64,000 nt of DNA from positions 8,122,001 through 8,186,000 of the forward strand of contig JAQFVV010000002.1 in NCBI GenBank assembly GCA_028023455.1. Reading direction: 5' to 3'. The notes under the pieces are model-generated. The model worked only from the letters and a program-made list of their open reading frames with translations. It ran no database searches and had not been told where the DNA came from. How positions within the stretch are numbered: the first letter of the stretch is position 1; each line of letters begins with the position of its first letter. The position numbers and the translations under genes were made by a program. The stretch comes from Epiperipatus broadwayi. Taxonomy: Eukaryota > Animalia > Onychophora. Below are positions 6,015 through 60,035 of this stretch, piece after piece.

Positions 6015-6847
6015 TTTTTTTTTTTTAACTTTATTAGTAACAAAATATTTACAAGAATTAGTATATTTACATTAAGAGCTTTTTACATTTTTTTTTAATA
6101 ATTTTTAATTTCTTAGGATGTTTTTAGAATATAATGATTTGAAACAAGATGATTACTGTCATCGCATTAATGAGCAACTAAGGAATACATTGCTTTGCAG
6201 TATTTTTTTTGTGACATTACTAGGTATATATTTCTGAGCATAAAGATAAATGTTATACCATTCTTTGTTTTTTTTTTTAAGTACATTATACTTTTTGTTA
6301 TCAAATATTACAGCACAACAGGCAAGCCATATTGTTCTCAGAGTGTGAACAGATACAAGGGCATTGAATGGTTTTAAATTCTTTATATTATTTATTAGGA
6401 CATTTTTAAAATTAATTGTATCCTTGTGGAATACAAAGCGACGTAAGGTTGAAAAGTATGAACATGTCTCAAAGATATGTGATGTATTTTCCAGGAGCAA
6501 ATTGCATAGTACACAAGTAGGATCAATGTTTAGTTTAAATCTATTTATGAGAAATAACTTTGTTGGAATTATATCAAGTAGCAGATTATACAGGAATTTT
6601 AACCATGAGTGAGGCACGTATAAATTTTGAAATTTAGTCAGTGTTCTTGCAGTAAATAGTGTTGACCAAAGTTGATTTAAGATGTGATATATTTAAGACT
6701 AAAATAGGATTAAAAAAAGGAAGTATAAAAAATGGTTAGATTCAGTTTAATATACAGTATAATAAAATGTTAGTACTTAGTAACAGAACAAAATAAAAAT
6801 AATAAATTATAGAAAAAAAGCTGACACATTGAAAAGATGGTAAAAGG
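6015..6847 (-). mobile_element. 5'-truncated L1/Tx1-like LINE 3' end with poly(A) and probable 10-bp TSD
   Basis: ORF 6159-6617 encodes a zf-RVT-type C-terminus (WLKFLYNLLLDIIPT...CVLCNLLLENTSHIFETC). T15 run at 6012-6026 is the poly(A). ATAGTGATTT occurs at 6005-6014 and 6848-6857. Confidence 0.75.
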
Positions 6848-10460: not shown

Positions 10461-12143
10461 TTGGGAAAAATAGTAATGTTAAACCTTCAGGAAAAGGGCG
10501 CAAAATGGAAATCTAGGAAACCCCGTCAATACTTGCATGTATTCAGGAAATCTAATATTGCAACAGATTTAAACGATAATACTCAAGCAAATAAAAATAA
10601 AACACATATAAATCAACCACAAACAAGCTTTAATGCACAAAATAGAAACACATATGCTAATATAGCAAAAATAAGAGTAACAGATAAAAACTCGTCCTAT
10701 TCTAGCTCAGGAAATCGCAACACAACAGTAACTGAAAATGCATTACGGGTAAACCCAACTAACTCAACACTACTTGATCTCATGGAAGATAATTTTAACA
10801 AACAACAACCCGCTAATATATCCACAGATAAATACATATTCACAACAGACAACTATGAAGAAGACCAATATAATCATCTATCATTTCGATTTAATAGCAC
10901 CATCCCTAATCTTTTGCTTAAATCACTGCTGAATTATAATAGTGACAAGAGTCTCGTCATGGCCATCACAGACCCTAACTACTCACTTATCAAATTCCCC
11001 ATAGACTCATTCTGTGCAATGATCAAAGAAGGGTCTATGGGTGTGGGCATTCACAGAATACTAACACATCCCAACAACCGCTATATAGCGGTCGAGTTAG
11101 AAACTTGGGCCGAAAGAAATAATTTCAAAGTCAACAATAGGACCATCAATAACCATTTTATTTGCTATATTGACTTCAATAGATTCTCAGTATTATCTGA
11201 CAGGATAAAAAACTGCATTTCTGGTTTTGAAGATCAGCTTCAAAGCACCCTCAGCCCATTTGGAAAGATATACAAATTTGTATATTTACCAGGAGATAGG
11301 GCTGGTGATGCAATATTATCTAACACTGCTGTGTTTGAATTGCATCTGAAACAAGGAATTAAACCTACAGATATACCCACTACCATCAGTTTCAAGGGAG
11401 CTCCCATGATTCTTACATTTCTGGGAGTAAGACCCCAATGCTTTGCTTGTGGTCAAAGAACACATTTGATCAGCGAGTGCATGACAAGGAATTGCTCCCA
11501 GTGTGAAGAAAGAAAAAACCAAAACCATAAATGTTCGGAAATAGACCAAAATGTGCAACCCTTACCCAAAACAAACCAAAGTGATAAGCAGTGTTTCACA
11601 ATAAACCAAAATATTAACAAACCAATTCACTTCAAAGAGATAACCAATTACTAAGTTTTAAAACTTCATTAAACCTACCACACACCACAAACAAACAAAA
11701 ACACACAAAAGTGCTCAAGTAACAATGTATCTATACTAACAAAGATAAAATCAAAAGATTTGAACACAGCTACACACAATCAAAAACAACCATACAATCT
11801 GATACACACCAACAATCAGGATAAAATGCTACCTTCGCAAAACCATATACCAGATCTCAATAGAGGCAAGACTCAAAACAAAATAATTAAGAAGTCGTCT
11901 TTTAAAAACAAAATACACATTGAATCTGAGTATAAACCTAATGATGAAACTGAAATGGAGCTTACACAATCCATAATTATAAAAAATAAAAGAAAATCTT
12001 TCCCAAACCAAAAGCCAGACTCAGAAGATGAAGGTTGTAGTTCCATAGCCCCAGCAAATACTATTAAATCTAGCACAACAAGCAGTATCAAGAAGATAAG
12101 AAAGACAAGTAACCCTATAATCCCAATCCATCAAATGGAATAG
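10461..12143 (+). pseudogene. LINE ORF1 (RRM-like region plus CCHC zinc knuckle), frameshifted
   Basis: 397-aa ORF with LSPFGKIYKF and CFACGQRTHLISEC; continues out of frame into the basic tail at 11,760-12,143. Confidence 0.8.
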
Positions 12144-12289
12144 ATAGAGAAGACACGTGAATCTGTCAATCTTTTAACACCAACCTTTTCAGAAGATTCT
12201 CAAGACCTCCGACGAAATATAAGATCAAAAACCAATTCACCATCTATAAATCCGCTTGCGGTTATCTATAGCGATCACCAACACAGTGC

Positions 12290-15200
12290 AGATTATTAAT
12301 TATAAGATTGTGGGGTTGAATATAAAAGGTATCAACTCCACTGCACTGCCCATGTATATGCCATAAAACACTGGTTTCAAAACAACCTACCACATATACT
12401 ATTCATGGGAGAAACTAAATATCACATAAACTCCAGCAGTATTATCATGGAAGAATTATCCAAAGTGGGTTACACTCAGTTTAGCAGTAGTAATGTAGCA
12501 GCTGGAGGAGTAGGCATAATTATAAATAATAAAAATGCTCCAGATAGTTTTAAAATTACTTACACAGACAAAAATATAATATCTATCAAACTCACATATG
12601 GAACTACCACCTTTAATGCTATATACATATACACTTCTAACAATGTCTGTTCATATATTAAAATAGTTAATAGCATCAACCTGATAATCTCCACCAGTAG
12701 CTGGCCAACAGCGATTGTTGGGGATTTTAACACTTCCTATGGAGAATTTGTCAATAAATACCTTCATCTTCTGAATAGAGGCTTTCTTAGCGGGGAAGGT
12801 TTTTTTCCAGATAGTGCTTTTTCATTCTATACCAGAAGACACAGATCTTTGATAGATCTGGTCTTTTACACAGCCGAATTTCACTACATTATGGAGGCAG
12901 TGCTTCAGCCTGTAGCATTCTCTGACCATTTTGCAGTGGTCATCTCAATGCAAATTGATAATCTCACACAACTGAATCACAACAAAACAATTACAATGCT
13001 AACAAAGGCCAACATAACTGAAGCCATCCCACCAGAGACATATATCCTATTTTCTAATAGATATACTCTCAAGACCACCTGAGGAGGCTTGGTTTGCACT
13101 AGTGGGAGTTCCGCAAACTCTAATAGTTCAGTACTCCCGCAGGTCAAAGTCCCCTACCTCATTATTAAAGGACCTAGAGAACATTAATGCTCAACTTAAA
13201 CAGTTTTCTACTGAAAGCAACTCGATAGATGACATCATCTCACTTAAGAATGAATATAAAGCAAAGCAAAAAGCCCTTGCTGAATATGTGTCTCTGAAAA
13301 GATCCAAGATATATCTGGCTCCTCAATATTGTTGGACTAGAGGATATCTCAGGTGGACACTGGGGCCACAGAAAAAACAAAATACTCCAATACTAATTAA
13401 ACATCAGGGCACCAGCATGACTGGATACTACATGCTTGAAAAAATTAAACTACACTTTGAAAACAAATTAAAAAAACACAACTCATCAGTAGATCGCGAT
13501 TGGACAAGACATTCATCCGGTGATGATCATTTGATCATAGTCCAAGATATTAAAAACAAACTATGCTCCCTTCCAGACAGCTTCCATCCCGGAATGCATG
13601 GGATACCTAAATTCCTCCTCTCCCACTTAAGCAATTTTACTGTCCCAATCATCATGTTAATGATTGACCATATTGTGCAAAAGCAAAGGTTCATTAAAAA
13701 TTTATATCCAGTTGCATTGGTGTCTTTTATAAAAAAGAGCAAAGACCCTACTGATATAAACAACATAAGACCCATATCCATGTCACCACTCTTAATAAAG
13801 ATTATAGAGGGTGTCATTAAAGATAAGATACAACATAAAATCCTGAGTCATATCATGCCCTCTCAGTATGCCAAGAAAGGCTCATCAGCACTCACGGCGA
13901 TTGGTGAAAACAAAATACTCTTGGATTACATTAGAACCAACAGAAAAATCCAAGCCCATTGCCGTACAACTTGACATATCTGAGGCATTCGACTCAGTCA
14001 ACATCAGCACACTGCTGATATTTTGGAGGCCTTGGTGTTCGATCCCAGATAATTCAGATACTGGACAATTTACTACACAAAAGGGAAATTCACATATCAC
14101 TCAATGGAGTATACACAAACAGTTTTACTCCGAATACTTCAATCCCACAAGGATCTCCACTCAGTGCTCTCCTATTGCCTGCTACATCAATCCACTTCTT
14201 AAAGACATTGAAGATAACCTGCCTGGAGTATATATACCCAGACTCAAAAGAGCGATCAAAGCAGTCGCTTACATGGATGATGTCTTGATCATTCTGTCAA
14301 CTCAGAAATATCTAAACACACTATATGAAATATTGGACAAATATACCAATCTATCAGACCTAAAAATAAATACAGGAAAATCCACAGCTTTATCTATCCT
14401 ATCTGGAAAAAAAATCAAATCGCGCTTCCAAGCTGAACCACAGAAATTTCTGGGATTTAATATTTCAAAATCACAATCAGCAATGTCTAAAGAACTTCAG
14501 GCAAAAATCCTCCAGTCCACAGACCAGATCACTAAGACCCTCTCAAAGGTATACCTTTCACTGCTAAATATAAAGATTTACAGCAAAATTGCATACTACC
14601 TGCCAATGATAAATGCAAATAAAACATTCATCAAGAAAATTGAGCAACATTGCTCAAGATTACTATGGAAAGGGCAAACTGTTACCATCAGCATGAGAAA
14701 CATGCAGGAAAACAAAAGATTAAATGGAATGTCACTACATTCCATCAATTAACTATCAGAAATCACACACTCTGATATATAATCTAGTCCAAAAGTACGG
14801 CCATGACTAGATCACCGAATCCATAATTCCTACCGTCACCCACCCCCCAAAAAATTAAGCTGGCTTGACCACCTAATCCTGTCAACAATGCAACAAAATA
14901 CAAATGCCCATAACAACTATCAAAGCAAGATCAATCTATGTAATGCCCATCGCATCCTAAAACAAGATAATCAAATCTCTACAAGATTAGGAATAACTAA
15001 TCACATGCTGATTTCCCTATTCAAGTATTGGGCTCTAGAACCAAAATAGTTAGATTACTTACTTAAAATTAATCTGGATGCCATGCCGGTCAACTGGTTC
15101 CTCAGATGTAAAAGATCTATCACCAAAGTCCAATCAATTTGACACAGCTGTGGCAGGGATGAAGAAACATTTGACCACATAATTAAAACATGCATGGGTC

Positions 15201-29209: not shown

Positions 29210-29255
29210 ATTGTCATTGATTAAATTCTAAATTTAAAATTTTATTGTTAGATTA
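29210..29255 (-). tRNA. trnL1: tRNA-Leu(TAG)-like remnant at the left NUMT edge
   Basis: Minus-strand anticodon arm TTAAA-TTTAGAA-TTTAA (29,237-29,221); other arms unclear. Confidence 0.4.
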
Positions 29256-29960
29256 AATTTCCATTTAATCTACTTTGTTTCGACTTTTCTTGTTTTTGCA
29301 AGAATGACGGGCGATATGTACATATTAATATTGATTTTCAATTTATCATGATAATATGATTTTACTGACAAATTCTGTTTATGAAATTTTTCAATTTTAT
29401 GTATGTTAATATAAATTAATGTAATTCATTTCATCTTAATAAAATTGCACCTTGACCTGATTTGATAGATTGTTCTATTTTGAGATTAATTTTAAGTAAT
29501 TTCTTATACGGTGGTATACAAATAAGTATTAAGTAAGGTAAGTCGTGGGTTGTCGATTATAGAAACAAATTCCTTTGTAAAAGTTAGTACCGTCAAATTT
29601 ATTTTGTTGTGTTTCTTTGAAGTATTGTTTTACGATAGAATAGCAGGGTATCTAATCCTGGTTTTGAACTAAATTTGGAATTATTTTAATAATATTATTA
29701 TTAGAAATTTCATTTTTAAGAAAAATATGGTTAAATTTATTTATTCAGAAAAAATTAATTTATAATGACATATAACCGCTGCTGCTGGCACGAATTTGGC
29801 CTCTAATAATTTTTAGATTTAAAGTAATTTATTACTTATGATTTTGTTAATAAAATATATTTTTTAATTGAAATTTTATGAAAAGTTTAAAAAGTTAATT
29901 TGTTTACATAAATTAAATAAAAGATTTAAGAATTAGTTTTTAAAAAATTGTATAGTTTAT
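29247..29960 (-). rRNA. rrnS: Mitochondrial small-subunit (12S) rRNA
   Basis: Reverse complements of conserved 12S motifs: GTGCCAGCAGCAGCGGTTA (about 29,773-29,791), TGTACATATCGCCCGTCA (about 29,305-29,322) and the terminal helix GTAGATTAAAT-GGAA-ATTTAATCTA. 5' end approximate. Confidence 0.92.
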
Positions 29961-29989
29961 ATATAAGTATATAGTAATTATATTATTTG

Positions 29990-30940
29990 AAAATAGTTTT
30001 TTAAAGAAATTGAAAAGGAGTAATTAAAATTTAGGAAGTAATTTATTGTACTTTTTGCATAATGGATGTATGATAAGTAGTTAATTTAACACCTCTAAAA
30101 AAATTGATCTAGGTTTTTTTAAAAAAATTGTTGCACAAATTTTTTTTAAAAAAAAACCTAGAAGTGAAATGCTAACGAAATTTTTGATATATAGTTCTTA
30201 TAAAATCACTATAGGTGATAAAATAAATTTATTAAATACATTAATGGTTTAGCATTAATGTAAATATTGGTATTTATTTATATGATGTTAAGGTTAAGTT
30301 TAATATTAAGATAAGTTAAGTTAATGTATGTTTAAATATATTATAAATATTAATTTTAGGAATTCAGCAAAAGTTGTTTCATCAGTTTATCAAAAACATA
30401 GCTTTATGAAAATATTTAGGGTATTGTCTGCTCAATGAGCATTAAATTGCCATGGTATTTATGACTATGCTAAGGTAGCATAATCATTTGTCTTATAAAT
30501 TAAGACTGGAATGAATGGATAAATGGGGCAGATTTCTTAGAGAAAAAATAATTTTTTTTAGTGAAGAGGCTAAAATGAAATTGAGGGACGAGAAGACCCT
30601 ATTAAGCTTAATAAGATTATTTTGTTGGGGAAACAAAAGAGAATATTTTCTTTAAAAATATTTTTTGATACGTGTTGCTCTTCCGATCTAATAGAATAAG
30701 TTACTATAGGGATAACAGCATAATTTTTTTTAAAAGTTCTTATTTACAAAGAAGATTATGACCTCGATGTTGGATTAGAAATATTATATGGTGAAGTTGT
30801 TGTATAAATTAGTCTGTTCGACTATTAAATTTCTACATGATCTGAGTTCAAATCGGTGTAAACCAGATTGGTTTCTATCTTCAAATATTTTGTGTTAGTA
30901 CGAAAGGACCACATGAAGTTTTTTAAAGAGTAGATTGAAC
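29990..30940 (+). rRNA. rrnL: Mitochondrial large-subunit (16S) rRNA
   Basis: AAGGTAGCATAATCA, GACGAGAAGACCCT, GGGATAACAGC, GACCTCGATGTTGGATT, ACATGATCTGAGTTCAAA, TAGTACGAAAGGACC on the + strand. Ends approximate. Confidence 0.93.
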
Positions 30941-30998
30941 TCTTTTAGGTAAATATATAGACTTTGGAAGTCTAAGATGAATGATTTTTCAATTAAAA
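30938..30998 (+). tRNA. trnP: tRNA-Pro(TGG)
   Basis: Anticodon arm TAGAC-TTTGGAA-GTCTA at 30,958-30,974, immediately before nad4L. Confidence 0.7.
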
Positions 30999-31277
30999 AT
31001 GTTAATTCCAATTATATTTATTATTGTTGGTGTTATTACATTTGTTATATATCGGGTTCATTTGTTGTCAATGTTATTAAGATTGGAGTTTATTATATTG
31101 AATATTTTTTGATTAATAATATCATGATTAGTGTTTTTAGGTAAGGAATTATTTTTAAGTTTAGTTTTTTTAACTTTAACTGCTTGTGAAGCTAGTTTAG
31201 GATTATCATTGATGGTTAGGTTAATTCGGAGTCACGGTAATGATTTATTCAATAGTTTAAGAATTGTAAGATGATAG
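30999..31277 (+). CDS. nad4L: NADH dehydrogenase subunit 4L (NUMT copy, frame intact)
   Basis: ATG to TAG; HLLSMLLSLEF and ACEASLGLSLMV..IRSHG motifs; classical 7-nt ATGATAG overlap with nad4. Confidence 0.92.
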
Positions 31278-32626
31278 AAATTTTTATAATATTTATTATG
31301 TTATTTGTTATGTGGATATTTGAGTTAATGCGTTGGGGATTTATATTGAATGTAATGTTAATTATTATATTAATTTTTTTTTTTACTAAATTAAATATAT
31401 GCATGTTTGTAACAAGAATTTCTAGAGGATTTGGTGTTGATATAGTGTCTATACCATTAACAATATTAAGAATATTAACTTGTGTATTAATGATATTTTC
31501 TAGAATAAAGATTTTGTTGAAGGATGATTATAAGGATTATTTTTGTTTAATAGTTTTGATTTTGAATGTTGTTTTATTTTATACTTTTGTTGCGTTGAAT
31601 ATTTTAGTGTTTTATGTATTATTTGAGTTTACTTTAATTCCTACAATTCTTTTGATTATAGGTTGAGGTTATCAGCCTGAACGTTTACAGGCTATGTTGT
31701 ATTTATTATTTTATACTTTGTTTGCATCATTCCCATTATTAATGGGAATTATTGGGATGTATTGATGAATAGGAAGAATATCTATTATTGTATTAATAAA
31801 AAGTTATTTTTTTATGAGTGAGTTTATGATATTATATTGAATTATTTGTATGTCTGCTTTTTTGGTAAAGTTACCAATTTATGTTGTTCATATTTGATTA
31901 CCAAAGGCTCATGTTGAGGCTCCAATTTCTGGGTCAATAATTTTAGCAAGGGTTTTGTTAAAGTTAGGAGGTTATGGTGTTATTCGATTTTCTATGATTT
32001 TTAAAAGAATTTCAGTTAAGTTTAGTGAGTTTTTTATTTGTTTGAGTTTGTTTGGAGGGATTATAACTAGAATGGTTTGTATTCGACAGGTTGATTTAAA
32101 AGCATTAATTGCTTATTCTTCTGTTGGGCATATAGGATTAATAATCAGGTCAGTTTTTGTTATAAGTAAGTGAAGGATTAATGCGGCTATATGAATAATG
32201 GTAGGGCATGGATTTTGTTCTTCTGGTTTGTTTTGTTTATCGAGAATTTCTTATGAGCGTTATCATTCTCGTAGAATGATGGTTTCTAAAGGAATGATGA
32301 GGTTGTTTCCAAGTTTAAGATTATTTTGATTTATGTTTGTTATTGCTAATATAGCAGCCCCACCATCTTTGAATTTATTAGGAGAAATTGGTATTATTAA
32401 TTCTTTAGTGTTTTGGAGTAATATTAGAATTTGTTTATTAATTTTTATTTCTTTTTTTGGTGCTGTATATAGTATATATTTATATTCATATACTCAGCAT
32501 GGACAAATATTTTTTAATTTAAATTGTATAAAATCAATTAGGTATGTTGAGTATTTTTTGTTGTTTTTACATTTGTTGCCATTGAATTTGTTGTTATTAA
32601 AATCTGAGTTTTTAATAGTTTATTAG
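31271..32626 (+). CDS. nad4: NADH dehydrogenase subunit 4 (NUMT copy, frame intact)
   Basis: [43 protein letters not shown]; one frame with only TGA interruptions. Confidence 0.95.
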
Positions 32627-32669
32627 AATTTTTAATTGGAAATTAAATGTAATATATACTTATATCTTT
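32612..32669 (-). tRNA. trnG: tRNA-Gly(TCC), 3' acceptor strand unmatched
   Basis: D arm GTA-TATAT-TAC; anticodon arm TTTAA-TTTCCAA-TTAAA (32,647-32,631). Confidence 0.7.
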
Positions 32670-32719
32670 TAGATTATTTAAAGCTTTGAAGGCTTTTAGT
32701 TTTGTTAACTTATTAGCTT
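32670..32719 (-). tRNA. trnW: tRNA-Trp(TCA), 3' end runs into trnG
   Basis: D arm AGTT-AACAA-AACT; anticodon arm AAAGC-CTTCAAA-GCTTT. Confidence 0.8.
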
Positions 32720-32763
32720 ATTTTTGAATTATGAATTCAAAAGCTTTTTTAGCTTATAGTGAA
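32720..32763 (-). tRNA. trnM: tRNA-Met(CAT), ends 4 nt after the anticodon arm
   Basis: D arm AGCT-AAAAA-AGCT; anticodon arm TTGAA-TTCATAA-TTCAA; then AAAT and trnW begins. Confidence 0.8.
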
Positions 32764-32810
32764 CTATAATTTAAACTTCAAAAGTTTAAGTGTCAAACAC
32801 TTATGAATTT
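32764..32810 (-). tRNA. trnQ: tRNA-Gln(TTG), 3' portion overlaps trnM
   Basis: D arm GTG-TTTGA-CAC; anticodon arm TAAAC-TTTTGAA-GTTTA. Confidence 0.75.
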
Positions 32811-33802
32811 TCCATATTATTTTTTATTTTATTTTTTGTTAATATTTAGTTTATTAATTCAAATGAGAATGAGTTCATGAATTTTTATTTAGGTTGGTTT
32901 AGAGATAAATATGTTATGTATTATTCCAATTTTAGTTAGAAGAATTAAAAATATAAATGAAAGGGCAGTTAAGTATTTTATTATTCAAGTATTTGGTTCT
33001 ATTATTTTATTAATTGGTTTTTTTTTAAGTACTATATTATTAATAAGTTATTATTACTATGATGTAATTGGATATGTTTTTTGAATATCAATGATGTTGA
33101 AAATGGGAGCTGCACCTTTTCATTTTTGATATCCTGGTGTTTTAGAGAATTTAAGATGATTAAATATTTTTTTGATGATAACAGTTCAAAAATTTGGACT
33201 TTTGTTTATTATAAGATATTTATTGAGGTTTAGGGTTTATTTATTTTTTAGGGTAATATTAAGAGTAATTATTGGTGGGGTTGGAGGTTTTAATCAAGTA
33301 ATAATACGTAGTTTGTTTGCATATTCATCTATTGGTCATGTTGGTTGGATAATTGTTTCTATTATGTTGAGGGATTCTGTTTGGGTTATTTATTATTCAT
33401 TTTATTTTATAATAATGATATTGTTTTGTATTTTATTTTATTTGAAAGGAATTGTTTATATTAATCAAATATTTATTTATTTTTCTAAATTTGAGAAATG
33501 GATTGTTTTATTAAGGATGCTTTCTTTAGGGGTTTTTCCCCCTTTAAGGGGTTTTTTTCCTAAAATTATAGTGTTAAATATTTTGATATTGAAAGGTGAG
33601 AAGATTTTGGTATTAATGATGTTAATAGGAATGTTAGTTGGATTATATTATTATGTTCGTTTAATGTATGTAAGAATAATGTTTGAGACATTAAGGTTAT
33701 TACATTATTTAAAAGTAAAAAAAAATTTAATATTGGATTGGTGATTACATGTTTTAATAATGGTAATATTATTTATCATTCCAGTTGGAATGATTTGATT
33801 TT
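32803..33802 (+). pseudogene. nad2: NADH dehydrogenase subunit 2 with premature TAG at codon 30
   Basis: ATG at 32,803; SSWIFI*VGLEMNML with TAG at 32,890-32,892 at the conserved Trp; KYFIIQ, KMGAAPFHFW, AYSSIGH. Incomplete stop abutting cox1. Confidence 0.9.
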
Positions 33803-33803
33803 A

Positions 33804-35326
<1,523 letters not shown>

Positions 35327-35327
35327 T

Positions 35328-36005
35328 ATGGCAAGGTGAAATGAGTTGATATTTCAGGATGCATCCTCTCCTTTAATGGAGCAATTGATTTTTTTTCATG
35401 ATCATTCGTTATTAGTTTTAATTTTAATTACAATTTTAATTGGGTATAGAATATTTAGTTTAATTTTGAATAAAAATTTGATGCGTTATTTGTTGGAAGG
35501 TCAGTGAATTGAAATGATTTGAACAGTTTTACCTGTATTTATTTTAGTATTTATTGCTTTTCCTTCATTACATTTATTATATATGTTGGATGAGGTTTCT
35601 GATCCGTTTTTAAGAATTAAGGTTGTTGGACATCAATGATATTGAAGGTATGAATATAGAGATTTTCTAGATGTTGAATTTGATTCTTATATAGTTAGGA
35701 TGGATGATTTAGAGTTTGGTGATTTTCGTCTTCTTGATGTTGATAATCGATTAATTTTACCATTTAATGGTCAGATTCGTTTTTTGATTAGGGCTGCTGA
35801 TGTTCTTCATTCTTGAACTGTTCCATCCTTAGGAGTAAAGGTTGATGCAGTTCCTGGGCGATTGAATCAGATTGTGTTGTATTTAAATCGGGTTGGATTA
35901 TTTTATGGACAATGTTCTGAAATTTGTGGTGCAAATCATAGTTTTATGCCTATTGTAATTGAATCTATTCCGATAAAGTTTTTTGTTAAATGGGTTATAA
36001 GATAA
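35328..36005 (+). CDS. cox2: Cytochrome c oxidase subunit 2 (NUMT copy, frame intact)
   Basis: [49 protein letters not shown]; follows cox1 after 1 nt with no trnL2. Confidence 0.96.
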
Positions 36006-36049
36006 AGAGTATAATTTATAAAAATATAAATATGTCAAATTTAAAATGA
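36005..36049 (+). tRNA. trnD: tRNA-Asp(GTC), only about 45 nt before the atp8 start
   Basis: Anticodon arm TAAAT-ATGTCAA-ATTTA (36,027-36,043); atp8 ATT begins at 36,050. Confidence 0.75.
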
Positions 36050-36208
36050 ATTCCTCAGATATATCCATTGAATTGAATGTTAATGATACCATTTAGAATT
36101 TTTATTTTATGAATTTATTTAGTTTTAGTTTACTATTTGATTAGATATTTAAAGTTTCAGGTGAAATTTAAAAATCAAATAAAAATTGTTTGTTTTTGGG
36201 AATGATAA
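36050..36208 (+). CDS. atp8: ATP synthase F0 subunit 8 (NUMT copy)
   Basis: ATT start, MPQMYPLNW...FWEW*; ATGATAA 7-nt overlap with atp6. Confidence 0.9.
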
Positions 36209-36875
36209 TAGGGTTATTTAATGTTTTTGATCCGTCGTCAAGAGTTTATATATTAGGATTTAATTGGGTTTCTATAATGATTGGAGTTTGTTTTATTCCT
36301 TTATGGTTTTGATTAATTCCTACTCGTTTAGTAGGAATTATAAATTTTATATTGAATTTTTTGAATAATGAATTTAAAATTCTTTTGATAATAAGAAATA
36401 TTAAGGGGATAACACTTATTTTTATTAGGTTATTTCTTATAATTATGTTAAATAATAGATTGGGTTTGATACCATATGTATTTACAAGAACAGCCCATTT
36501 ATTGGTTACTTTAAGATTAGCTTTTCCTTTATGGATTAGTTTTTTGATTTTTGGATGAGTTAATAAAATAATAATAATGTTTGCTCATTTAGTTCCATTG
36601 GGAACACCTTCAGTTCTAATATCATTTATGGTTTGTATTGAGACAATTAGAAATTTTATTCGTCCATTGACTTTATCTGTTCGATTAGCGGCAAATATAA
36701 TTGCTGGTCATTTATTATTGAGATTAGTTGGAGGTCAGGGAAGATTTTTAGGTATAGTGATGTTATTAGCGTTATTATTTGGGCAAACATTGTTAATAAT
36801 GCTTGAGAGGGCTGTTTCTGTTATTCAATCATATGTTTTTGTTGTTTTAAGAAGTTTATATTCAAGTGAGGTATA
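36202..36875 (+). CDS. atp6: ATP synthase F0 subunit 6 (NUMT copy)
   Basis: [45 protein letters not shown]. Probably an incomplete stop before cox3. Confidence 0.93.
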
Positions 36876-36877
36876 TT

Positions 36878-37663
36878 ATGATAAGACATAATCATCCATA
36901 TCATATGGTTGAGTTGAGTCCATGACCGATTATTGGGGCGTGCGGGGCATTATTATTAACATCTGGATTAGTAAATTGATTTCATAATTATATAATAGGA
37001 TTATTATTAATAGGAGTTATTATTATTATTTTAACAATAATTCAATGGTGGCATGATGTTGTACGTGAAGGTACATATCAGGGGCTTCATACTACAAATG
37101 TAGTATTTGGTCTTCGTTGAGGTATAATTTTGTTTATTTTATCAGAAGTTTTATTTTTTTTTAGATTTTTTTGGGCATTTTTTCATAGAAGTCTTGCTCC
37201 GACAATAGATTTAGGGTCTTATTGACCACCATCAGGTGTAATAGTCTTGAATCCATTTCAAGTTCCTTTATTAAATACTGCTGTATTGTTAGCTTCAGGA
37301 GTTACTGTGACTTGGGCTCATCATAGTTTGATAGAAAGAAATTATACTCAAGGGGTTCAGGGATTGTTTTTTACTGTTTTATTAGGTTTGTATTTTACTT
37401 TATTACAAGGAATAGAATATTATGAATCAAGCTTTTCTATTTCTGATTCTGTTTATGGAACAACATTTTTTGTTGCTACTGGATTTCACGGATTACATGT
37501 AATTATTGGTAGTAGATTTTTATTGATTTGTTTAATACGACAATTTAGTTTTCATTTTTCTAAAATTCATCATTTTGGTTTTGAAGCTTCTGCTTGATAT
37601 TGACATTTTGTTGATGTTGTTTGGTTATTTTTATTTATTTCAATTTATTGATGGGGATCATAG
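36878..37663 (+). CDS. cox3: Cytochrome c oxidase subunit 3 (NUMT copy)
   Basis: [52 protein letters not shown] stop; WWHD replaces the near-invariant WWRD. Confidence 0.95.
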
Positions 37664-37670
37664 ATTTTTG

Positions 37671-38021
37671 ATGTTAGTATTAATAATTATATTTTTTGTT
37701 GTATTTTTAATTGTTTTAGTATTATTAATGTTTATGTATTTTTTTCTGAGAAAAGGTATAAAGACCGTGAAAAAAATTCTCCTTTTGAATGTGGATTTGA
37801 TCCTTTTAGATCAAGGCGATTACCTTTTTCTTTACGGTTTTTTTTAATTGGAATTATTTTTTTAATTTTTGATATTGAAATTGTTTTAATTTTACCATAT
37901 CCTATTAGAATAGAGTTAATTCAGGTTAGAAGAATGTACTTGGTTGGTCAATTATTTTTGTTTATTTTATTAATTGGTTTAATTCATGAATGAAATCAAG
38001 GTGCTCTTGATTGAGCAGTTT
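37671..38021 (+). pseudogene. nad3: NADH dehydrogenase subunit 3 with a 1-nt frameshift in a T7 run
   Basis: Hydrophobic N-terminus from ATG 37,671 is out of frame with [13 protein letters not shown] / [14 protein letters not shown]; shift at 37,739-37,745; incomplete stop. Confidence 0.9.
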
Positions 38022-38070
38022 ATTTACCAAAACAAATGTGTTTAGTTTCGACCTTTAGTGTAACTTGAAC
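38020..38070 (+). tRNA. trnR: tRNA-Arg(TCG)-like
   Basis: TTAG-TTTCGAC-CT anticodon loop at 38,046-38,052; weak stems. Confidence 0.55.
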
Positions 38071-38117
38071 TTATATATTTTGTTTTCAAAACAAATTCTT
38101 TCATAAGATTAATAGTA
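38062..38117 (-). tRNA. trnS2: tRNA-Ser(TGA)
   Basis: Anticodon arm TTTGT-TTTGAAA-ACAAA (38,095-38,079), directly downstream of cob on the same strand (ancestral cob-trnS2 link). Confidence 0.7.
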
Positions 38118-39249
38118 ATTCAATAATTTTTTTATAAAAAATTATTGAGTATGGGATTAAGAAAAATGTCATGAAGTATGCTATGGATAATAGTTGACCA
38201 AAAAAGATGTATGGTGGTTCAACTGGATTTGCTCCAATTCATGTTAGTAGAATAATGATTCTAATATATATTCAAAAAAGAAATTGATTTCATTTATTAA
38301 ATGATGATGATAAATAATTTTTTGAAATTAAAGGAAGAGAGAATAGAATTATAATAGATATTAGTAGGGCAATTACTCCTCCTAGTTTGTTTGGAATTGA
38401 TCGGAGAATTGCGTAGGCAAATAAGAAATATCATTCAGGTTGAATGTGAATTGGAGTTACTAATGGGTTTGCTGGAATTCAATTTTCTGGATCCCCTAAT
38501 AAGTTAGGATAGAATAAAACTAAAAAGGTTAATAATAATATGAATATTATTATTGAAATTATATCTTTAATTGAGAAATATTGATGAAATGGAATTTTAT
38601 CAGAATTTGATTTTAACCCTAATGGGTTATTTCTTCCTGTTTGGTGAAGAAATAATAAGTGAATTATAACTAGGACTATAATAATAAAAGGTAATAGAAA
38701 ATGTAGTGAGAAAAATCGAGTTAATGTTGCATTTCTAACTGCAAATCCTCCTCATAGTCAATTAACAGTTATTGTTCCAATATATGGAATTGCTGATAAA
38801 AGGTTTGTAATTACAGTTGCTCCTCAGAAAGATATTTGTCCTCATGGAAGAACATAACCAAGAAAAGCTGTTGCTATAGTTAACAATAGAAGAATAATTC
38901 CAATATTTCATGTATAATTTAGTTTAAATGAGTTATAGTAAATTCCGCGTCCAATATGGATGTATAGACAAATGAAGAAGAATGATGCTCCATTTCTATG
39001 AAAAAATCGAATTAATCATCCATTATTTATACCTCGTGAGATGTGAATAATGGATCTGAATGCTAAGTCTATGTTATCTGAATAGTGTATTGCTAGTATA
39101 ATTCCTGTGATAATTTGAAATAGTAATGAAATGCCAAGTAATGATCCAAAGTTTCATAGATATGAAATATTAGATGGGGTTGGTAAATCAATTAATCTAT
39201 TGTTTATAATTAGTAATAATGGATGAGTTTTTCGTTCTGGTTTTATCAT
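38118..39249 (-). CDS. cob: Cytochrome b (NUMT copy, frame intact)
   Basis: [62 protein letters not shown]; incomplete stop. Confidence 0.96.
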
Positions 39250-39250
39250 A

Positions 39251-40180
39251 TTATCATAGTTGAATAATTTTATAGTTTAAAATGATTATTAAAACTCTTA
39301 AGCTAATTGGTAAGAAAACTTTTCATGTTAGAAATATTAATTTGTCATATCGAAAACGTGGATAAGAACCACGGATTCAAATAAATGAAAATGAAATTAA
39401 TGTTGTTTTAATTATTATAAAAAATGGGAAGTTTATGTTACTTCCAAAAAAAATTATAGAAGTAATTATTCTTATTAGGAGAATACTTGAATATTCTGCT
39501 ATAAAAATTATAGCAAATCTTCCTCTTCTATATTCTGTGTTAAATCCTGAAACTAATTCACTTTCACTTTCTGCAAAGTCAAAAGGAGCTCGATTAGTTT
39601 CAGCTAAAATTGAGGAGAATCAACAAATAAATAATGGTAAAAGGATAATAAAGTTTCAGATTAATAATTGAGAATTATCAATAATTATAAGGTTATATCT
39701 TTCTGATAAAAAAATAATGGTTAATAAAATGAGAGCTAATCTAACTTCATATGAAATGGTTTGAGCAACTGCTCGTATTGTCCCAAGTAAGGAAAATTTT
39801 GAGTTTGATGATCATCCAGCTATTATTATAAAATAAACTGTTATTCTTGTTATGCAAAGGAAAAATAATAATGCAAAATTAAAATTTATTGGGTTTCATT
39901 TTATTGGGATTAATATTCAAATAAATAGTGAAATAATAATTCTTATTGTTGGTGCAATTAGGAAAGTTATTCGATTTCTTAAATTTAATCATCTATTTTC
40001 TTTACAGAAAAGTTTTATTGCATCACTAATTGGTTGTAGAATTCCAATTAAACTAATTTTGTTTGGACCTTTTCGAATTTGAATATATCCAAGAATTTTT
40101 CGTTCAAGTAATGTTAAGAATGCTACTCTAATTAGAATAGAGATTAATAGAATTAAGTAGAAAATTAATGATAAAATCAT
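39251..40180 (-). CDS. nad1: NADH dehydrogenase subunit 1 (NUMT copy, frame intact)
   Basis: [54 protein letters not shown]; 930 nt from ATG to TAA. Confidence 0.96.
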
Positions 40181-40223
40181 ATTTACGAAACTTAAATTCG
40201 TTACATTTTTCTGACATGAAATT
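40181..40223 (-). tRNA. trnL2: tRNA-Leu(TAA), ends 4 nt after the anticodon arm at the nad1 ATG
   Basis: D region TCAG-AAAAA-TGT; anticodon arm ACGAA-TTTAAGT-TTCGT (40,201-40,185). Confidence 0.75.
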
Positions 40224-40260
40224 TGTTTAGTGTAAATAAACTGCTTTTTGCTTTTAGGTT
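40224..40260 (-). tRNA. trnV: tRNA-Val(TAC), ends about 1 nt after the anticodon arm
   Basis: Anticodon arm GTTTA-TTTACAC-TAAAC (40,241-40,225). Confidence 0.7.
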
Positions 40261-40300
40261 TGATTTACAAAATCAATATGCTAATTTATTTGGAACTATT
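40260..40300 (-). tRNA. trnT: tRNA-Thr(TGT), ends at the anticodon arm
   Basis: Anticodon arm TTGAT-TTTGTAA-ATCAA (40,276-40,260); trnV follows immediately. Confidence 0.65.
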
Positions 40301-40345
40301 TAGTTTTTATAATATTGATTTGTGGAATCAAAGATTAATTGAAGG
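40294..40345 (+). tRNA. trnH: tRNA-His(GTG)
   Basis: Anticodon arm TTGAT-TTGTGGA-ATCAA (40,315-40,331), directly upstream of nad5 (ancestral trnH-nad5 link). Confidence 0.75.
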
Positions 40346-42050
40346 GTTTAGGTTTAAATTTAGTAAGAATATTTTGTTTATTTTTTTTTGAATTTTATTT
40401 ATTTGTAGAATTCGTTTTTGTAATGAAAAGCTTGTTTATGTTTTTGAAATTGAATTATTAGAAGTTAATTCTAGAAGAATTATTATAACTATAATTTTTG
40501 ATTGAATATCAGTAATGTTTATAACTGTAATTTTTCTTATTTCTGGATCTGTTATAAAATTTAGATGTGAATATATAATTGAAGAAAAAAATAAGTTACG
40601 TTTTTGTATTATTGTAGTTTTATTTATTATTTCTATAGTTTTTTTAGTTGTTTCACCAAATTTGATTTCTATTTTGTTAGGATGAGATGGTTTAGGGTTG
40701 GTATCTTATGTCTTAGTAATTTATTATCAAAATAGGAAATCAAATAGGGCTGGTATATTAACAATTTTAAGAAATCGAATTGGGGATGTTGCTTTTTTGA
40801 TTTGTATTGCATTTATACTAAATCATGGTAATTGGAATTATTTTTCAATGAGTTGGTTAGATATAAATATTATTAATGTTATGATTATATTAATACTATT
40901 AGCTGGAATTACTAAAAGTGCTCAAATTCCTTTTTCAGCATGATTACCTGCTGCTATGGCAGCACCAACTCCTGTATCAGCATTAGTTCATTCATCAACA
41001 TTGGTTACTGCTGGAGTTTTTTTGTTAATTCGTTTTTCTGAATTTTTTAGAACAGAAATGTCATTTAAGGTTAGTTTATTATTTATATCAAGGTTAACTA
41101 TGATAATGGCAAGAATTGTTGCTAATTTTGAATATGATATTAAAAAAATTATTGCTTTGTCAACTCTTAGGCAACTTGGGTTGATAATAAGTATTGTATC
41201 ATTAGGATTTTCTACTTTAGCTTTTTTTCATTTATTAACACATGCAGTTTTTAAAGCATTATTGTTTATTTGTTCTGGAAGAATTATTCATAATTTTAAT
41301 CATATTCAAGATATTCGAATACTTGGATTTGTAACTAATCAGTTACCAAAGGTAAGAATTTGTTTAAATACAGCAAATTTGGCTTTATGTGGGATACCAT
41401 TTTTGGCTGGGTTTTATTCTAAGGATATAATTTTGGAAATATATTGTTATAGAAATTGAAATATTATTTCATTTTTTATATTATTTGTTGCTACTTCAAT
41501 AACAGCATCATATTCTATTCGAATAGCTTATTATTCATTTTGAAAAAAAGTTCATTCTAAAAGAATGAACTCTGTTTTTGAAGGAGGAAGAGATATTAGA
41601 GATTCTGCAATAATAATAAGTTTAGGGGCTGTTATTGGTGGGTCAATATTTAGATGGATAATTTTTAGTAGAGTTATTTATATTGAATTAATTTTTATAT
41701 TAAAAATTTTAACATTAATAATTACTTTTATAGGTGGTGGCTACATACTTAGTTTTCAAAAAGAATTTTTTTTAAAAAAAAATATAATAAAAATTTATTT
41801 TTTCTTTTCTCAAATATGATTTTTTCCAAAAATCAGGTCACAAATGTTTATAAAATTAATTATAAAATGAAGAAAATTTTCTTTTGAAAAAATTGATTCT
41901 TTATGAATTGAATCAATAGGACCTCAAAATATTTATATTACTGTGATAAAAGGATCTATAGTATTACAAATTATTCAGAAAAATTCAGTAAAGACGTATT
42001 TATTTAGGATTATTATTATGGTTTCATTTATTTATTTTTTTTTCTTTTAA
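40338..42050 (+). CDS. nad5: NADH dehydrogenase subunit 5 (NUMT copy, frame intact; start approximate)
   Basis: [68 protein letters not shown]; TAA at 42,048-42,050. Confidence 0.95.
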
Positions 42051-42102
42051 CATAGCTCTTAGCATATTGTTGAAGATAATAAGATGCAACAATAAATTGT
42101 TA
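42045..42102 (+). tRNA. trnF: tRNA-Phe(GAA), apparently T-armless
   Basis: D arm GCT-CTT-AGC; anticodon arm TATTG-TTGAAGA-TAATA; acceptor TTAACA/TGTTAG; follows nad5. Confidence 0.75.
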
Positions 42103-42135
42103 GTTAGAAACTAATAATAAACTAATTTAAGAACA
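42085..42135 (-). tRNA. trnS1: Possible tRNA-Ser(TCT)
   Basis: TTAG-TTTCTAA-CTAA arm on the minus strand (42,114-42,100); rest of the fold uncertain. Confidence 0.35.
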
Positions 42136-42165
42136 ATAAATTGTAAATTTATTTTAAATTTTTAT

Positions 42166-42190
42166 GACTCGCCTTTTTTTTTGGCGAGTC
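42166..42190. promoter_or_regulatory. GC-rich stem-loop with T9 loop in the non-coding region (putative replication-origin hairpin)
   Basis: GACTCGCC-TTTTTTTTT-GGCGAGTC: a perfect 8-bp stem in otherwise very AT-rich sequence. Confidence 0.65.
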
Positions 42191-42312
42191 GATGTAAAAA
42201 AGAATTTGTATTTGTATGTATTAGTATTTTTTTGATATAAATTTTATTAGAAAATAATGAGATATTGGTTATTTTTTACTAAGAAAAGTTTTTTTAATAG
42301 TATATATTGAAT

Positions 42313-42364
42313 ATGTTTGTATATTTAAATTATAAAATTTAATTTGCGTTTAAAAGTTGAATGA
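42313..42364 (+). tRNA. trnA: tRNA-Ala(TGC)-like
   Basis: Anticodon arm TTTAA-TTTGCGT-TTAAA (42,338-42,354). Confidence 0.5.
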
Positions 42365-42425
42365 GTATTTGTAAGCAATTTGCTTTTAATTGTTAATTAA
42401 TTTAGTTAGCCAGATTTGGTGTACA
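42365..42425 (+). tRNA. trnN: tRNA-Asn(GTT)-like
   Basis: D arm AAGC-AATTT-GCTT; anticodon arm TTAA-TTGTTAA-TTAA (42,386-42,400). Confidence 0.55.
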
Positions 42426-42555
42426 TTGATGATGTATATATATATATATAAAAAGCTTATTGATGCAATTAATATATCAAGGGTACAAATGATTTCGCGC
42501 AAATGCGTAAAATATGAATCGTGTTATTTATATAGTTTTTACTAGAATGTCTTGT

Positions 42556-59000: not shown

Positions 59001-59657
59001 TTTTAAACCCATTGCAAATCTGTATACATTTTGATATCTTGCATGATGATCATGCCTCTTACCCACCAATTACAAGTAGTACATATATCAGTATCAATTA
59101 TATCATATCAAATTAAATCAAATGAAAAAAAAAGAGCAGACTACTTTATCTATATACCGTGAACAATCATATATACCCACTATTATTTGCACCATGCCTT
59201 ATTAGGATGATCATTACAATATATATTAGTGTACTAAACATTTTACACACACTAAGTTTTTTAAGAATATAATATTCAGTGTTTGCCAGAATACCACATT
59301 TAAATATATTTAATATTTTTATTATAAAATATATCTATTCTATAAACAATGAGAAAATAAATATCATTTTCTCGAGTATCTAAATAGGAAATCAATATTA
59401 CATTAGGTTAAAATATTATGCAAATTTTCAGATTTGTTTACTCATTTATTTAGAAAATGTATCTGTTAATATTTATTTTATATAAAATACAAGTTTTAAA
59501 CTGCTTTTTCACTTATTTGCAAAATAGTTTTGTATAGGTCAAACATGTAATGGTTAAATGTCCACAAATGCAATTACCTCATTGCAGATAGCAAAATTCA
59601 TTAAAATTTCCCACCCCACAGAAACAAACTAAAATTAATGTTAAAACCAAGTTGTAC

Positions 59658-60035
59658 CTGAAAAATGTTCTTTTAATTCGTCTTCACTAATGCTGTGAGG
59701 TAAATTGCCTACAAACACTTGCTGACAATCAGGATACCGTGATGTCATTCTTCGAGTTTCATTCTCAGCTATATCTCCATCACCACCACGACCAGAACCA
59801 CTGGCACTTCGATTATTTCGGGAGTTCATCCTATCCCGAGATTGACGGGCATTGCGTTGAGGTGCTGGTGGTTGATTACCTGGCAAACATGCTTCAATTT
59901 TTAAGTTATCTACTTTTGAAAACACTGGATTTGACCCCGAAGTGTTTTTGATAACCATCGAATTAGAGCTCATACCAGGAATACTGGAAGGAGGTGTGCT
60001 TTTACTCACAACATTAGCAAATGTTTTAGGACCAC
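59658..60035 (-). CDS. G3BP: G3BP/Rasputin internal exon (378 nt): PxxP/Arg-rich linker plus RRM start
   Basis: Acceptor ttttaag, donor GTACAA. GPKTFANVVSKSTPP resembles G3BP RTFSWASVTSKNLPP; RRMTSRYPDCQQVFVGNLPHSISEDELKEHFS resembles [30 protein letters not shown]. Confidence 0.92.

Follow-up and report, generated by a model that had tools for sequence, protein, structure and literature searches.

The closest described counterparts of the genes reported here are the mitochondrial tRNA genes of velvet worms. Segovia, Pett, Trewick and Lavrov (2011, Mol Biol Evol 28:2873; summarised in PMC11571959 and PMC13116273) described such genes in Oroperipatus sp. and Peripatoides sympatrica, ending with the anticodon arm or shortly beyond it. 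According to the summary of that work in PMC11571959, cDNA showed that the tRNAs of Oroperipatus, which belongs to the Peripatidae, are completed by up to 34 added nucleotides and that even parts of the anticodon arm are rebuilt. Here we describe eleven truncated tRNA genes of similar build in a mitochondrial-like part of a 64-kb stretch of DNA from contig JAQFVV010000002.1 (the window; all positions are counted from its first letter). Our reading, to which we give a probability of about 0.82, is that the genes are of the 3'-truncated mitochondrial type that characterises peripatid velvet worms and are kept in a young insertion, within nuclear DNA, that covers most of the mitogenome. Both the phenomenon and these clusters have already been published for Peripatidae, and the finding is thus a rediscovery. 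New here are the reading of the stretch as a nuclear copy of mitochondrial DNA (NUMT), the exact gene ends, the half-gene evidence for tRNAs annotated as missing in peripatids, and a poly(A) lead at trnR.

The present case differs from those of Oroperipatus and Peripatoides in that it comes from another species, with a NAD2 protein 75% identical to that of Epiperipatus biolleyi, concerns a lesioned nuclear copy and is known from sequence rather than from cDNA. Its extreme member is trnR, which ends inside the anticodon stem. Spiders and gall midges (Masta and Boore; Beckenbach and Joy 2009, PMC2817422) have likewise lost the T arm and the 3' acceptor strand and have butt-joined genes, for which a repair that uses the 5' strand as template has been put forward. 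These are independent lineages, and gall midges rearrange only tRNA genes, whereas here protein genes are rearranged too. In land snails and the centipede Lithobius an upstream tRNA is also released with a truncated 3' end and completed post-transcriptionally, but theirs miss the last 1-6 nt of the acceptor, while here about 25-34 nt are missing, including the whole T arm. The armless mitochondrial tRNAs of acariform mites and Enoplea resemble the present genes in their length of about 40-55 nt and in the AT-rich, compact genomes that carry them. Those genes encode both acceptor strands and function without large additions, whereas here the 3' strand is absent. To our knowledge the tRNA 3' rebuilding of velvet-worm mitochondria is the most extreme of its kind, and we know of no enzyme that has been identified as responsible for it.

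Structure and boundaries of the truncated tRNA genes

The minus strand carries two butt-joined arrays, trnQ-M-W-G (32809-32627) and trnT-V-L2 (40298-40181). In each truncated gene the encoded part consists of the 5' acceptor strand, the D arm or D loop and the anticodon arm, with no more than a short variable region after it, and the gene then abuts the next one; within the arrays the anticodon stem is a perfect 5 bp and the next gene follows 0-11 nt on. The genes are as follows.

32764-32809, minus strand: trnQ(UUG), 46 nt; acceptor 5' strand 32809-32803, D arm GTGT-TTG-ACAC, anticodon arm 32788-32772, 8-nt tail
32720-32763, minus strand: trnM(CAU), 44 nt; acceptor TTCACTA, then TA, D arm AGCT-AAAAA-AGCT, anticodon arm 32740-32724, tail AAAT (4 nt), followed by trnW at 32719
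32669-32719, minus strand: trnW(UCA), 51 nt; acceptor AAGCTAA, then TA, D arm AGTT-AACAA-AACT, anticodon arm 32696-32680, 11-nt tail
32627-32668, minus strand: trnG(UCC), 42 nt; acceptor AAGATAT, then AA, D arm GTA-TATAT-TAC, anticodon arm 32647-32631, tail AATT (4 nt)
36005-36049, plus strand: trnD(GUC), 45 nt; acceptor AAGAGTA, then TA, D arm ATTT-ATAA-AAAT, anticodon arm 36027-36043, 6-nt tail, followed by the atp8 ATT at 36050
38023-38054, plus strand: trnR(UCG), 32 nt; acceptor TTTACCA, then AA, 2-bp D stem, anticodon stem 5' strand TTTAG, loop TTTCGAC, then CT of the 3' strand; 5' part tentative
38055-38117, minus strand: trnS2(UGA), 63 nt; acceptor TACTATT, then AA, D arm TCTT-ATGA-AAGA, anticodon arm 38095-38079, T arm 38075-38059 (loop GTTCAAG)
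40181-40223, minus strand: trnL2(UAA), 43 nt; anticodon arm 40201-40185, tail AAAT (4 nt), followed by the nad1 ATG at 40180-40178
40224-40259, minus strand: trnV(UAC), 36 nt; 18-nt 5' half (acceptor ACCTAAA, 2-bp D stem GC-AAAAA-GC), anticodon arm 40241-40225, 1-nt tail
40260-40298, minus strand: trnT(UGU), about 39 nt; anticodon arm 40276-40260, 0-nt tail; 5' boundary tentative (weak D region)
40289-40337, plus strand: trnH(GUG), 49 nt; anticodon arm 40315-40331, 6-nt tail, followed by the nad5 ATT at 40338

The 5' half is regular in trnQ, trnM, trnW, trnG, trnD and trnS2, with a 7-nt acceptor strand, TA or AA, a D stem of 3-4 bp and one connecting nucleotide, and the anticodon stem is intact in every truncated gene except trnR. 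Several genes share bases with, or directly touch, their neighbours. The first 7 nt of trnQ, which has neither a T arm nor a 3' acceptor strand, overlap the start of nad2 on the opposite strand, the first base of trnD is also the last of the cox2 stop codon TAA (36003-36005), and the 5' ends of trnT and trnH overlap on opposite strands. The trnS2 gene, in which a T arm is present and the 3' acceptor strand absent, comes directly after the incomplete stop T of cob at 38118.

An earlier note on this DNA, made from the letters alone, had described clusters of half tRNA genes ending at or just after the anticodon arm as a feature of the mitogenome. That anatomy is confirmed, with the correction that the stretch is best read as a nuclear copy of mitochondrial DNA and that the arrays are on the minus strand. 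The junctions are as the note had them: 4 nt from the anticodon stem of trnM to trnW (stem end 32724, trnW start 32719), 4 nt from trnL2 to the nad1 ATG (stem end 40185), about 1 nt from trnV to trnL2 (stem end 40225, trnL2 start 40223), 0 nt from trnT to trnV (stem end 40260, trnV start 40259) and 6 nt from trnD to atp8 (stem end 36043). For trnQ and trnW, whose 3' parts it had placed within the next tRNA, the tails run 8 nt and 11 nt before that tRNA begins. It had also found no matching 3' acceptor strand for trnG, and indeed AATT is followed at once by the nad4 stop codon (32624-32626, opposite strand), with no complement to the 5' acceptor strand. Three truncated cases, trnH, trnR and trnS2, come in addition to those it had listed.

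The anticodon hairpins of G-W-M-Q (32631-32803) can also be read as tRNA-like arms on the plus strand, with the anticodons GGA, TGA, ATG and CAA. These mirror arms might guide cutting of the plus-strand nad4/nad2 transcript.

Absence of an encoded 3' part

Half-length tRNA genes are well above chance in this DNA. Perfect anticodon-arm motifs occur within the protein genes at a background rate of 2.7 per kb per strand, while the 176-nt spacer that holds G-W-M-Q has four against 0.47 expected; the T-V-L2 spacer has three. For the 3' side we took the best 7-nt partner of each 5' acceptor strand, from 3 to 50 nt past the anticodon stem, and compared it with that found in random pieces of the same mitochondrial DNA. 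Within those 50 nt none of trnQ, trnM, trnW, trnG, trnD, trnL2, trnV, trnS2 and trnI has a 3' acceptor strand better than random mitochondrial sequence (P 0.19-1.0), even with overlaps allowed. In the same test trnF has a 7/7 partner. A 3' acceptor strand that ARAGORN proposes for trnH inside nad5 is not above chance.

These results bear on the possibility that the genes are full-length and overlap by 18-32 nt, each complete tRNA being obtained by alternative cutting of different transcripts. In its mitochondrial mode ARAGORN does give full-length models for trnQ (77 nt), trnM (62 nt) and trnW (67 nt), and the 3' strand proposed for trnQ matches at 6 of 7 positions. The proposed strands nevertheless sit in the anticodon or D arms of the next tRNA, contain mismatches and do no better than random sequence (P 0.41-0.90 for the three genes), while trnD, trnL2 and trnH would need to borrow protein-coding sequence that gives 5-6 of 7 pairs (P 0.86-0.97). 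Two substitutions in the trnW acceptor of related species, described below, also have no compensating change among the differences listed. We regard overlapping full-length genes as very improbable. The same ARAGORN mode makes false calls inside nad4 and gives plausible complete genes for trnF, trnA and trnP.

A different proposal would be that the genes, at 36-51 nt, work as encoded, in the manner of the minimal armless tRNAs of acariform mites or enoplean nematodes. Their lengths are similar, and the D regions of trnV, trnT and trnR are very reduced. Armless tRNAs, however, encode both acceptor strands, and here the tails are 0-11 nt and no 3' strand rises above chance from 3 nt past the anticodon stem onwards. 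Most of the genes keep a good D arm, so that the loss is on the 3' side only, and peripatid relatives add the missing part, according to the summary in PMC11571959. This proposal appears slightly less probable still than that of overlapping genes.

Other searches gave little. Standard ARAGORN found no tRNA in the window, Rfam at its gathering thresholds had no match there, and at E<=10 on the G-W-M-Q region Rfam returned chance matches only and no tRNA model. Scanning for separately encoded 3' halves, as an exact 7-mer complement of the acceptor after a hairpin, gave scattered chance matches only and is uninformative in such AT-rich DNA. The earlier note had named full-length copies elsewhere in the mitogenome as one observation that would tell against it. 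Within the 64-kb window, whose mitochondrial-like stretch lacks about 1.1 kb of the mitogenome, there is no second copy of any of the eleven truncated genes. The minimum-free-energy folding of the arrays is weakly better than that of shuffled sequences (z -2.2 and -1.4) and does not resolve tRNA structures; the centroid fold recovers several of the D and anticodon hairpins.

Conservation in two related species

For comparison we used Logan contigs from two other species of one study, here called X1 and X2, over 32560-38200 at 80% likeness. These contigs are probably RNA, since they are very deep and short and one of them has a poly(A) end. Each species has a contig collinear with the window across G-W-M-Q; over 32619-32832 that of X1 differs by 7 substitutions and 2 small gaps, and over 32560-32771 that of X2 by 8 substitutions and 1 gap. 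In this cluster the identity is about 96% in both species, the gaps being insertions of 1-2 nt, and in the protein genes of the high-depth contigs it is about 89-93%. A contig of X2 also spans cox2-trnD-atp8 (35918-36203) free of gaps. Because the contigs are collinear over G-W-M-Q and gap-free in X2 over cox2-trnD-atp8, we take the compact arrangement to belong to living mitochondrial genomes and not to result from decay of the nuclear copy.

Were the truncation instead a product of such decay, by deletions after insertion, or an artefact of assembly, the lesions that this copy has in nad2, cox1 and probably nad3 would be in keeping with it. The collinear high-depth contigs, with their insertions of 1-2 nt only, argue against this explanation, as do the same compact clusters published for peripatid mitogenomes (PMC13116273) and the anticodon stems, all intact save that of trnR. 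We consider it the least probable of the explanations discussed here.

Among the differences listed, the substituted sites of the cluster are in the 5' acceptor strands of trnW (32715 and 32717, which are its positions 5 and 3) and trnG (32664) and in the tail of trnW (32671 and 32677), and none is in a D or anticodon arm of G-W-M-Q. Neither of the two substitutions in the trnW acceptor is matched by a compensating change among these listed differences. Such uncompensated changes fit a 3' strand that is copied from the 5' strand after transcription.

Contigs of X1 and X2 also have in common a joint from 33726 to 36098 that skips 2371 nt, from the end of nad2 to atp8, with 24 nt on the shorter side. 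It could be either a chance similarity or a real minor molecule.

Mitochondrial origin and probable nuclear setting

The stretch that carries the genes and its three putative lesions are placed as follows.

29210-42500, no strand: putative peripatid mitochondrial-genome NUMT, about 13.3 kb; boundaries approximate, drawn from GC content, GC skew, reading frames in code 5 and the content of the flanks
32890-32892, plus strand: in-frame TAG in nad2 (32803-33803), at a position that is Trp in E. biolleyi NAD2; putative lesion of the nuclear copy
35187-35195 (approximate), plus strand: frameshift in cox1 (33804-35326), not in a long homopolymer; C-terminus WESLVSKR ... LEW ... PP in the other frame
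37739-37745, plus strand: frameshift in nad3 (ATG 37671 to TA 38022) at a run of 7 T; hydrophobic N-terminus out of frame with the core

Within about 29210-42500 the GC content is 25.0% and the GC skew +0.324, against 27.9% and 0.004 in the flanks of the window. Along the stretch the gene order is rRNAs, trnP, nad4L, nad4, G-W-M-Q on the minus strand, nad2, cox1, cox2, trnD, atp8, atp6, cox3 and nad3, followed by trnR, trnS2 (minus), cob (minus), nad1 (minus), L2-V-T (minus), trnH, nad5, trnF, a hairpin, trnA, trnI and trnC. Read with the invertebrate mitochondrial code, cob and nad1 are minus-strand genes, and nad4L, nad4, nad2, cox1, cox2, atp8, atp6, cox3, nad3 and nad5 are plus-strand genes; nad6 is absent, with about 1.1 kb of the mitogenome. 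By far the best match of a nad2 piece free of stop codons is the NAD2 of Epiperipatus biolleyi, and the full gene, translated in code 5, is identical to it at 250 of 333 residues. The order of the protein genes is exactly that listed for Peripatidae in PMC13116273, a 2026 comparison of onychophoran mitogenomes in which trnG-trnW-trnM-trnQ, trnL2-trnV and trnR-trnS2, all present here, are clusters common to all Peripatidae. The base composition nearly equals that of E. biolleyi mitochondrial DNA (Table S3 of PMC13116273). On the strength of the NAD2 match, the published gene order and clusters of the family and the composition, we assign the stretch from its sequence to the mitochondrial DNA, or a copy of such DNA, of a peripatid velvet worm.

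Two other identities were considered. Gene order and boundaries together with the nad2 match rule out a gall midge, and they do the same for a mite (Tetranychus/Panonychus or Dermatophagoides), for all the likeness in truncated tRNAs, short rRNAs and reversed skew.

We favour the reading of the stretch as a young NUMT because it has nuclear sequence on both sides, has lesions in nad2, cox1 and probably nad3, and has lost nad6 and about 1.1 kb. The left flank has open reading frames (ORFs) for a LINE-like endonuclease and reverse transcriptase at 12405-14749, and the right flank has an RRM exon, an ORF at 59641-60006 on the minus strand that ends in the start of an RRM domain. In cox1 the conserved C-terminus runs in the shifted frame to a TAA at 35324-35326. 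The nad3 frameshift is probably a real lesion, with the contigs of X2 having an eighth T in the run that restores the frame. Like other NUMTs, the stretch is mitochondrial sequence in nuclear flanks, incomplete and with stop and frameshift lesions; it differs from them in being unusually long, at about 92% of a genome of about 14.4 kb, and little decayed.

True organelle DNA might instead have been misjoined into a nuclear scaffold, in which case the tRNA genes would be working copies. The majority of the reading frames are intact, the composition matches that of E. biolleyi mitochondrial DNA (Table S3 of PMC13116273), and the nad3 shift lies in a T run, where assembly errors are prone to occur and where X1 has the same run length. 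Against such a misjoin stand the change from TGG or TGA to TAG at a conserved Trp of nad2, the cox1 frameshift outside any homopolymer, the missing 1.1 kb or so with nad6, and the nuclear sequence on both sides within one contig. We consider a misjoin improbable, if the least improbable of the alternatives weighed here. The anatomy of the tRNA genes mirrors that of organelle genes whether the stretch is a NUMT or a chimeric assembly.

Other features of the stretch and its flanks

Complete-looking tRNA genes of 63-67 nt are found for trnF (42045-42111), with an acceptor stem of 7/7, trnA (42315-42378) and trnP (30933-30995). The anticodon arms of trnI and trnC (42400-42474) are 37 nt apart, which is the same butt-joined compaction, and the mitochondrial-like sequence stops shortly past trnC. 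In the non-coding part after trnF there is a GC-rich hairpin at 42166-42190, GACTCGCC-T9-GGCGAGTC, a candidate stem-loop of the control region or replication origin. In the rRNA region, at 29687-29727, overlapping hairpins resemble anticodon arms, that of E(UUC) on the plus and that of K(CUU) on the minus strand; they may represent additional truncated tRNA genes lying between the genes for the two rRNAs. In the left flank there are remains of a LINE-like retrotransposon (endonuclease, reverse transcriptase, zf-RVT) at 10461-14752 on the plus strand and 6159-6617 on the minus strand.

Proposed maturation and the end of trnR

The earlier note had interpreted the half genes by tRNA 3' rebuilding of the velvet-worm type. 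The peripatid identity and the Oroperipatus cDNA work, as summarised in PMC11571959, support that interpretation, and we infer 3' editing in the present species by homology with Oroperipatus. In the organelle, polycistronic transcripts would be cut where the following tRNA or mRNA has its 5' end, and half-molecules would be released. By the same homology the T arm would then be added, largely without a template, the 3' acceptor strand would be copied from the 5' strand, and CCA would be added. The nuclear tRNA copies themselves are inert, the real substrates being the equivalent genes of the organelle.

Several points weigh against this account or parts of it. The apparently complete trnF, trnA and trnP mean that truncation is not universal, and the 5' boundaries of trnT, trnV and trnR depend on weak 2-bp D stems. 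The comparison with the contigs covers 32560-38200 only, and the T-V-L2-H array lies beyond it; the conservation pattern within G-W-M-Q is drawn from the listed differences. The contigs of X1 have no indel at the T run of nad3, which makes that lesion less certain. Finally, the poly(A) end at trnR, to which we now turn, is that of a single contig from another species.

The anticodon stem of trnR is the sole imperfect one, its 5' strand TTTAG facing an encoded 3' strand CTTTA with two mismatches. A contig of X1 carries 15 A directly after 38054, that is, after the CT with which the 3' strand of the stem begins. If AAA is added at this point the strand becomes CTAAA and the stem is perfect, while the encoded continuation TTA gives the two mismatches; addition of A alone would thus finish the anticodon stem of trnR. 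T38054 is also a first codon base in the frame of nad3, and an A-tail at this site gives an in-frame TAA in an uncut nad3-trnR RNA; with trnR starting at 38023, nad3 ends in TA at 38021-38022. The end of trnR within the anticodon stem fits the rebuilding of the anticodon arm in Oroperipatus (PMC11571959). We therefore raise, as a tentative and rather doubtful suggestion, that poly(A) addition may be one of the steps by which tRNAs are repaired in peripatid mitochondria.

Implications for onychophoran mitochondria

The window adds no new kind of system; what it provides, for one more peripatid, is the exact ends of eleven truncated tRNA genes. The tRNAs reported as lost in annotations of peripatid mitogenomes, in which 13-14 of 22 are found, may be present as half-genes. 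There is also a warning for users of this assembly, as the mitochondrial features read from it would be those of a nuclear pseudocopy. The addition of A at trnR offers one concrete mechanistic lead. If the suggestion made for it is true, the onychophoran tRNA rebuilding pathway would have its first identified enzyme in the mitochondrial poly(A) polymerase, and the nuclear copy would be a dated snapshot of the extent of truncation.

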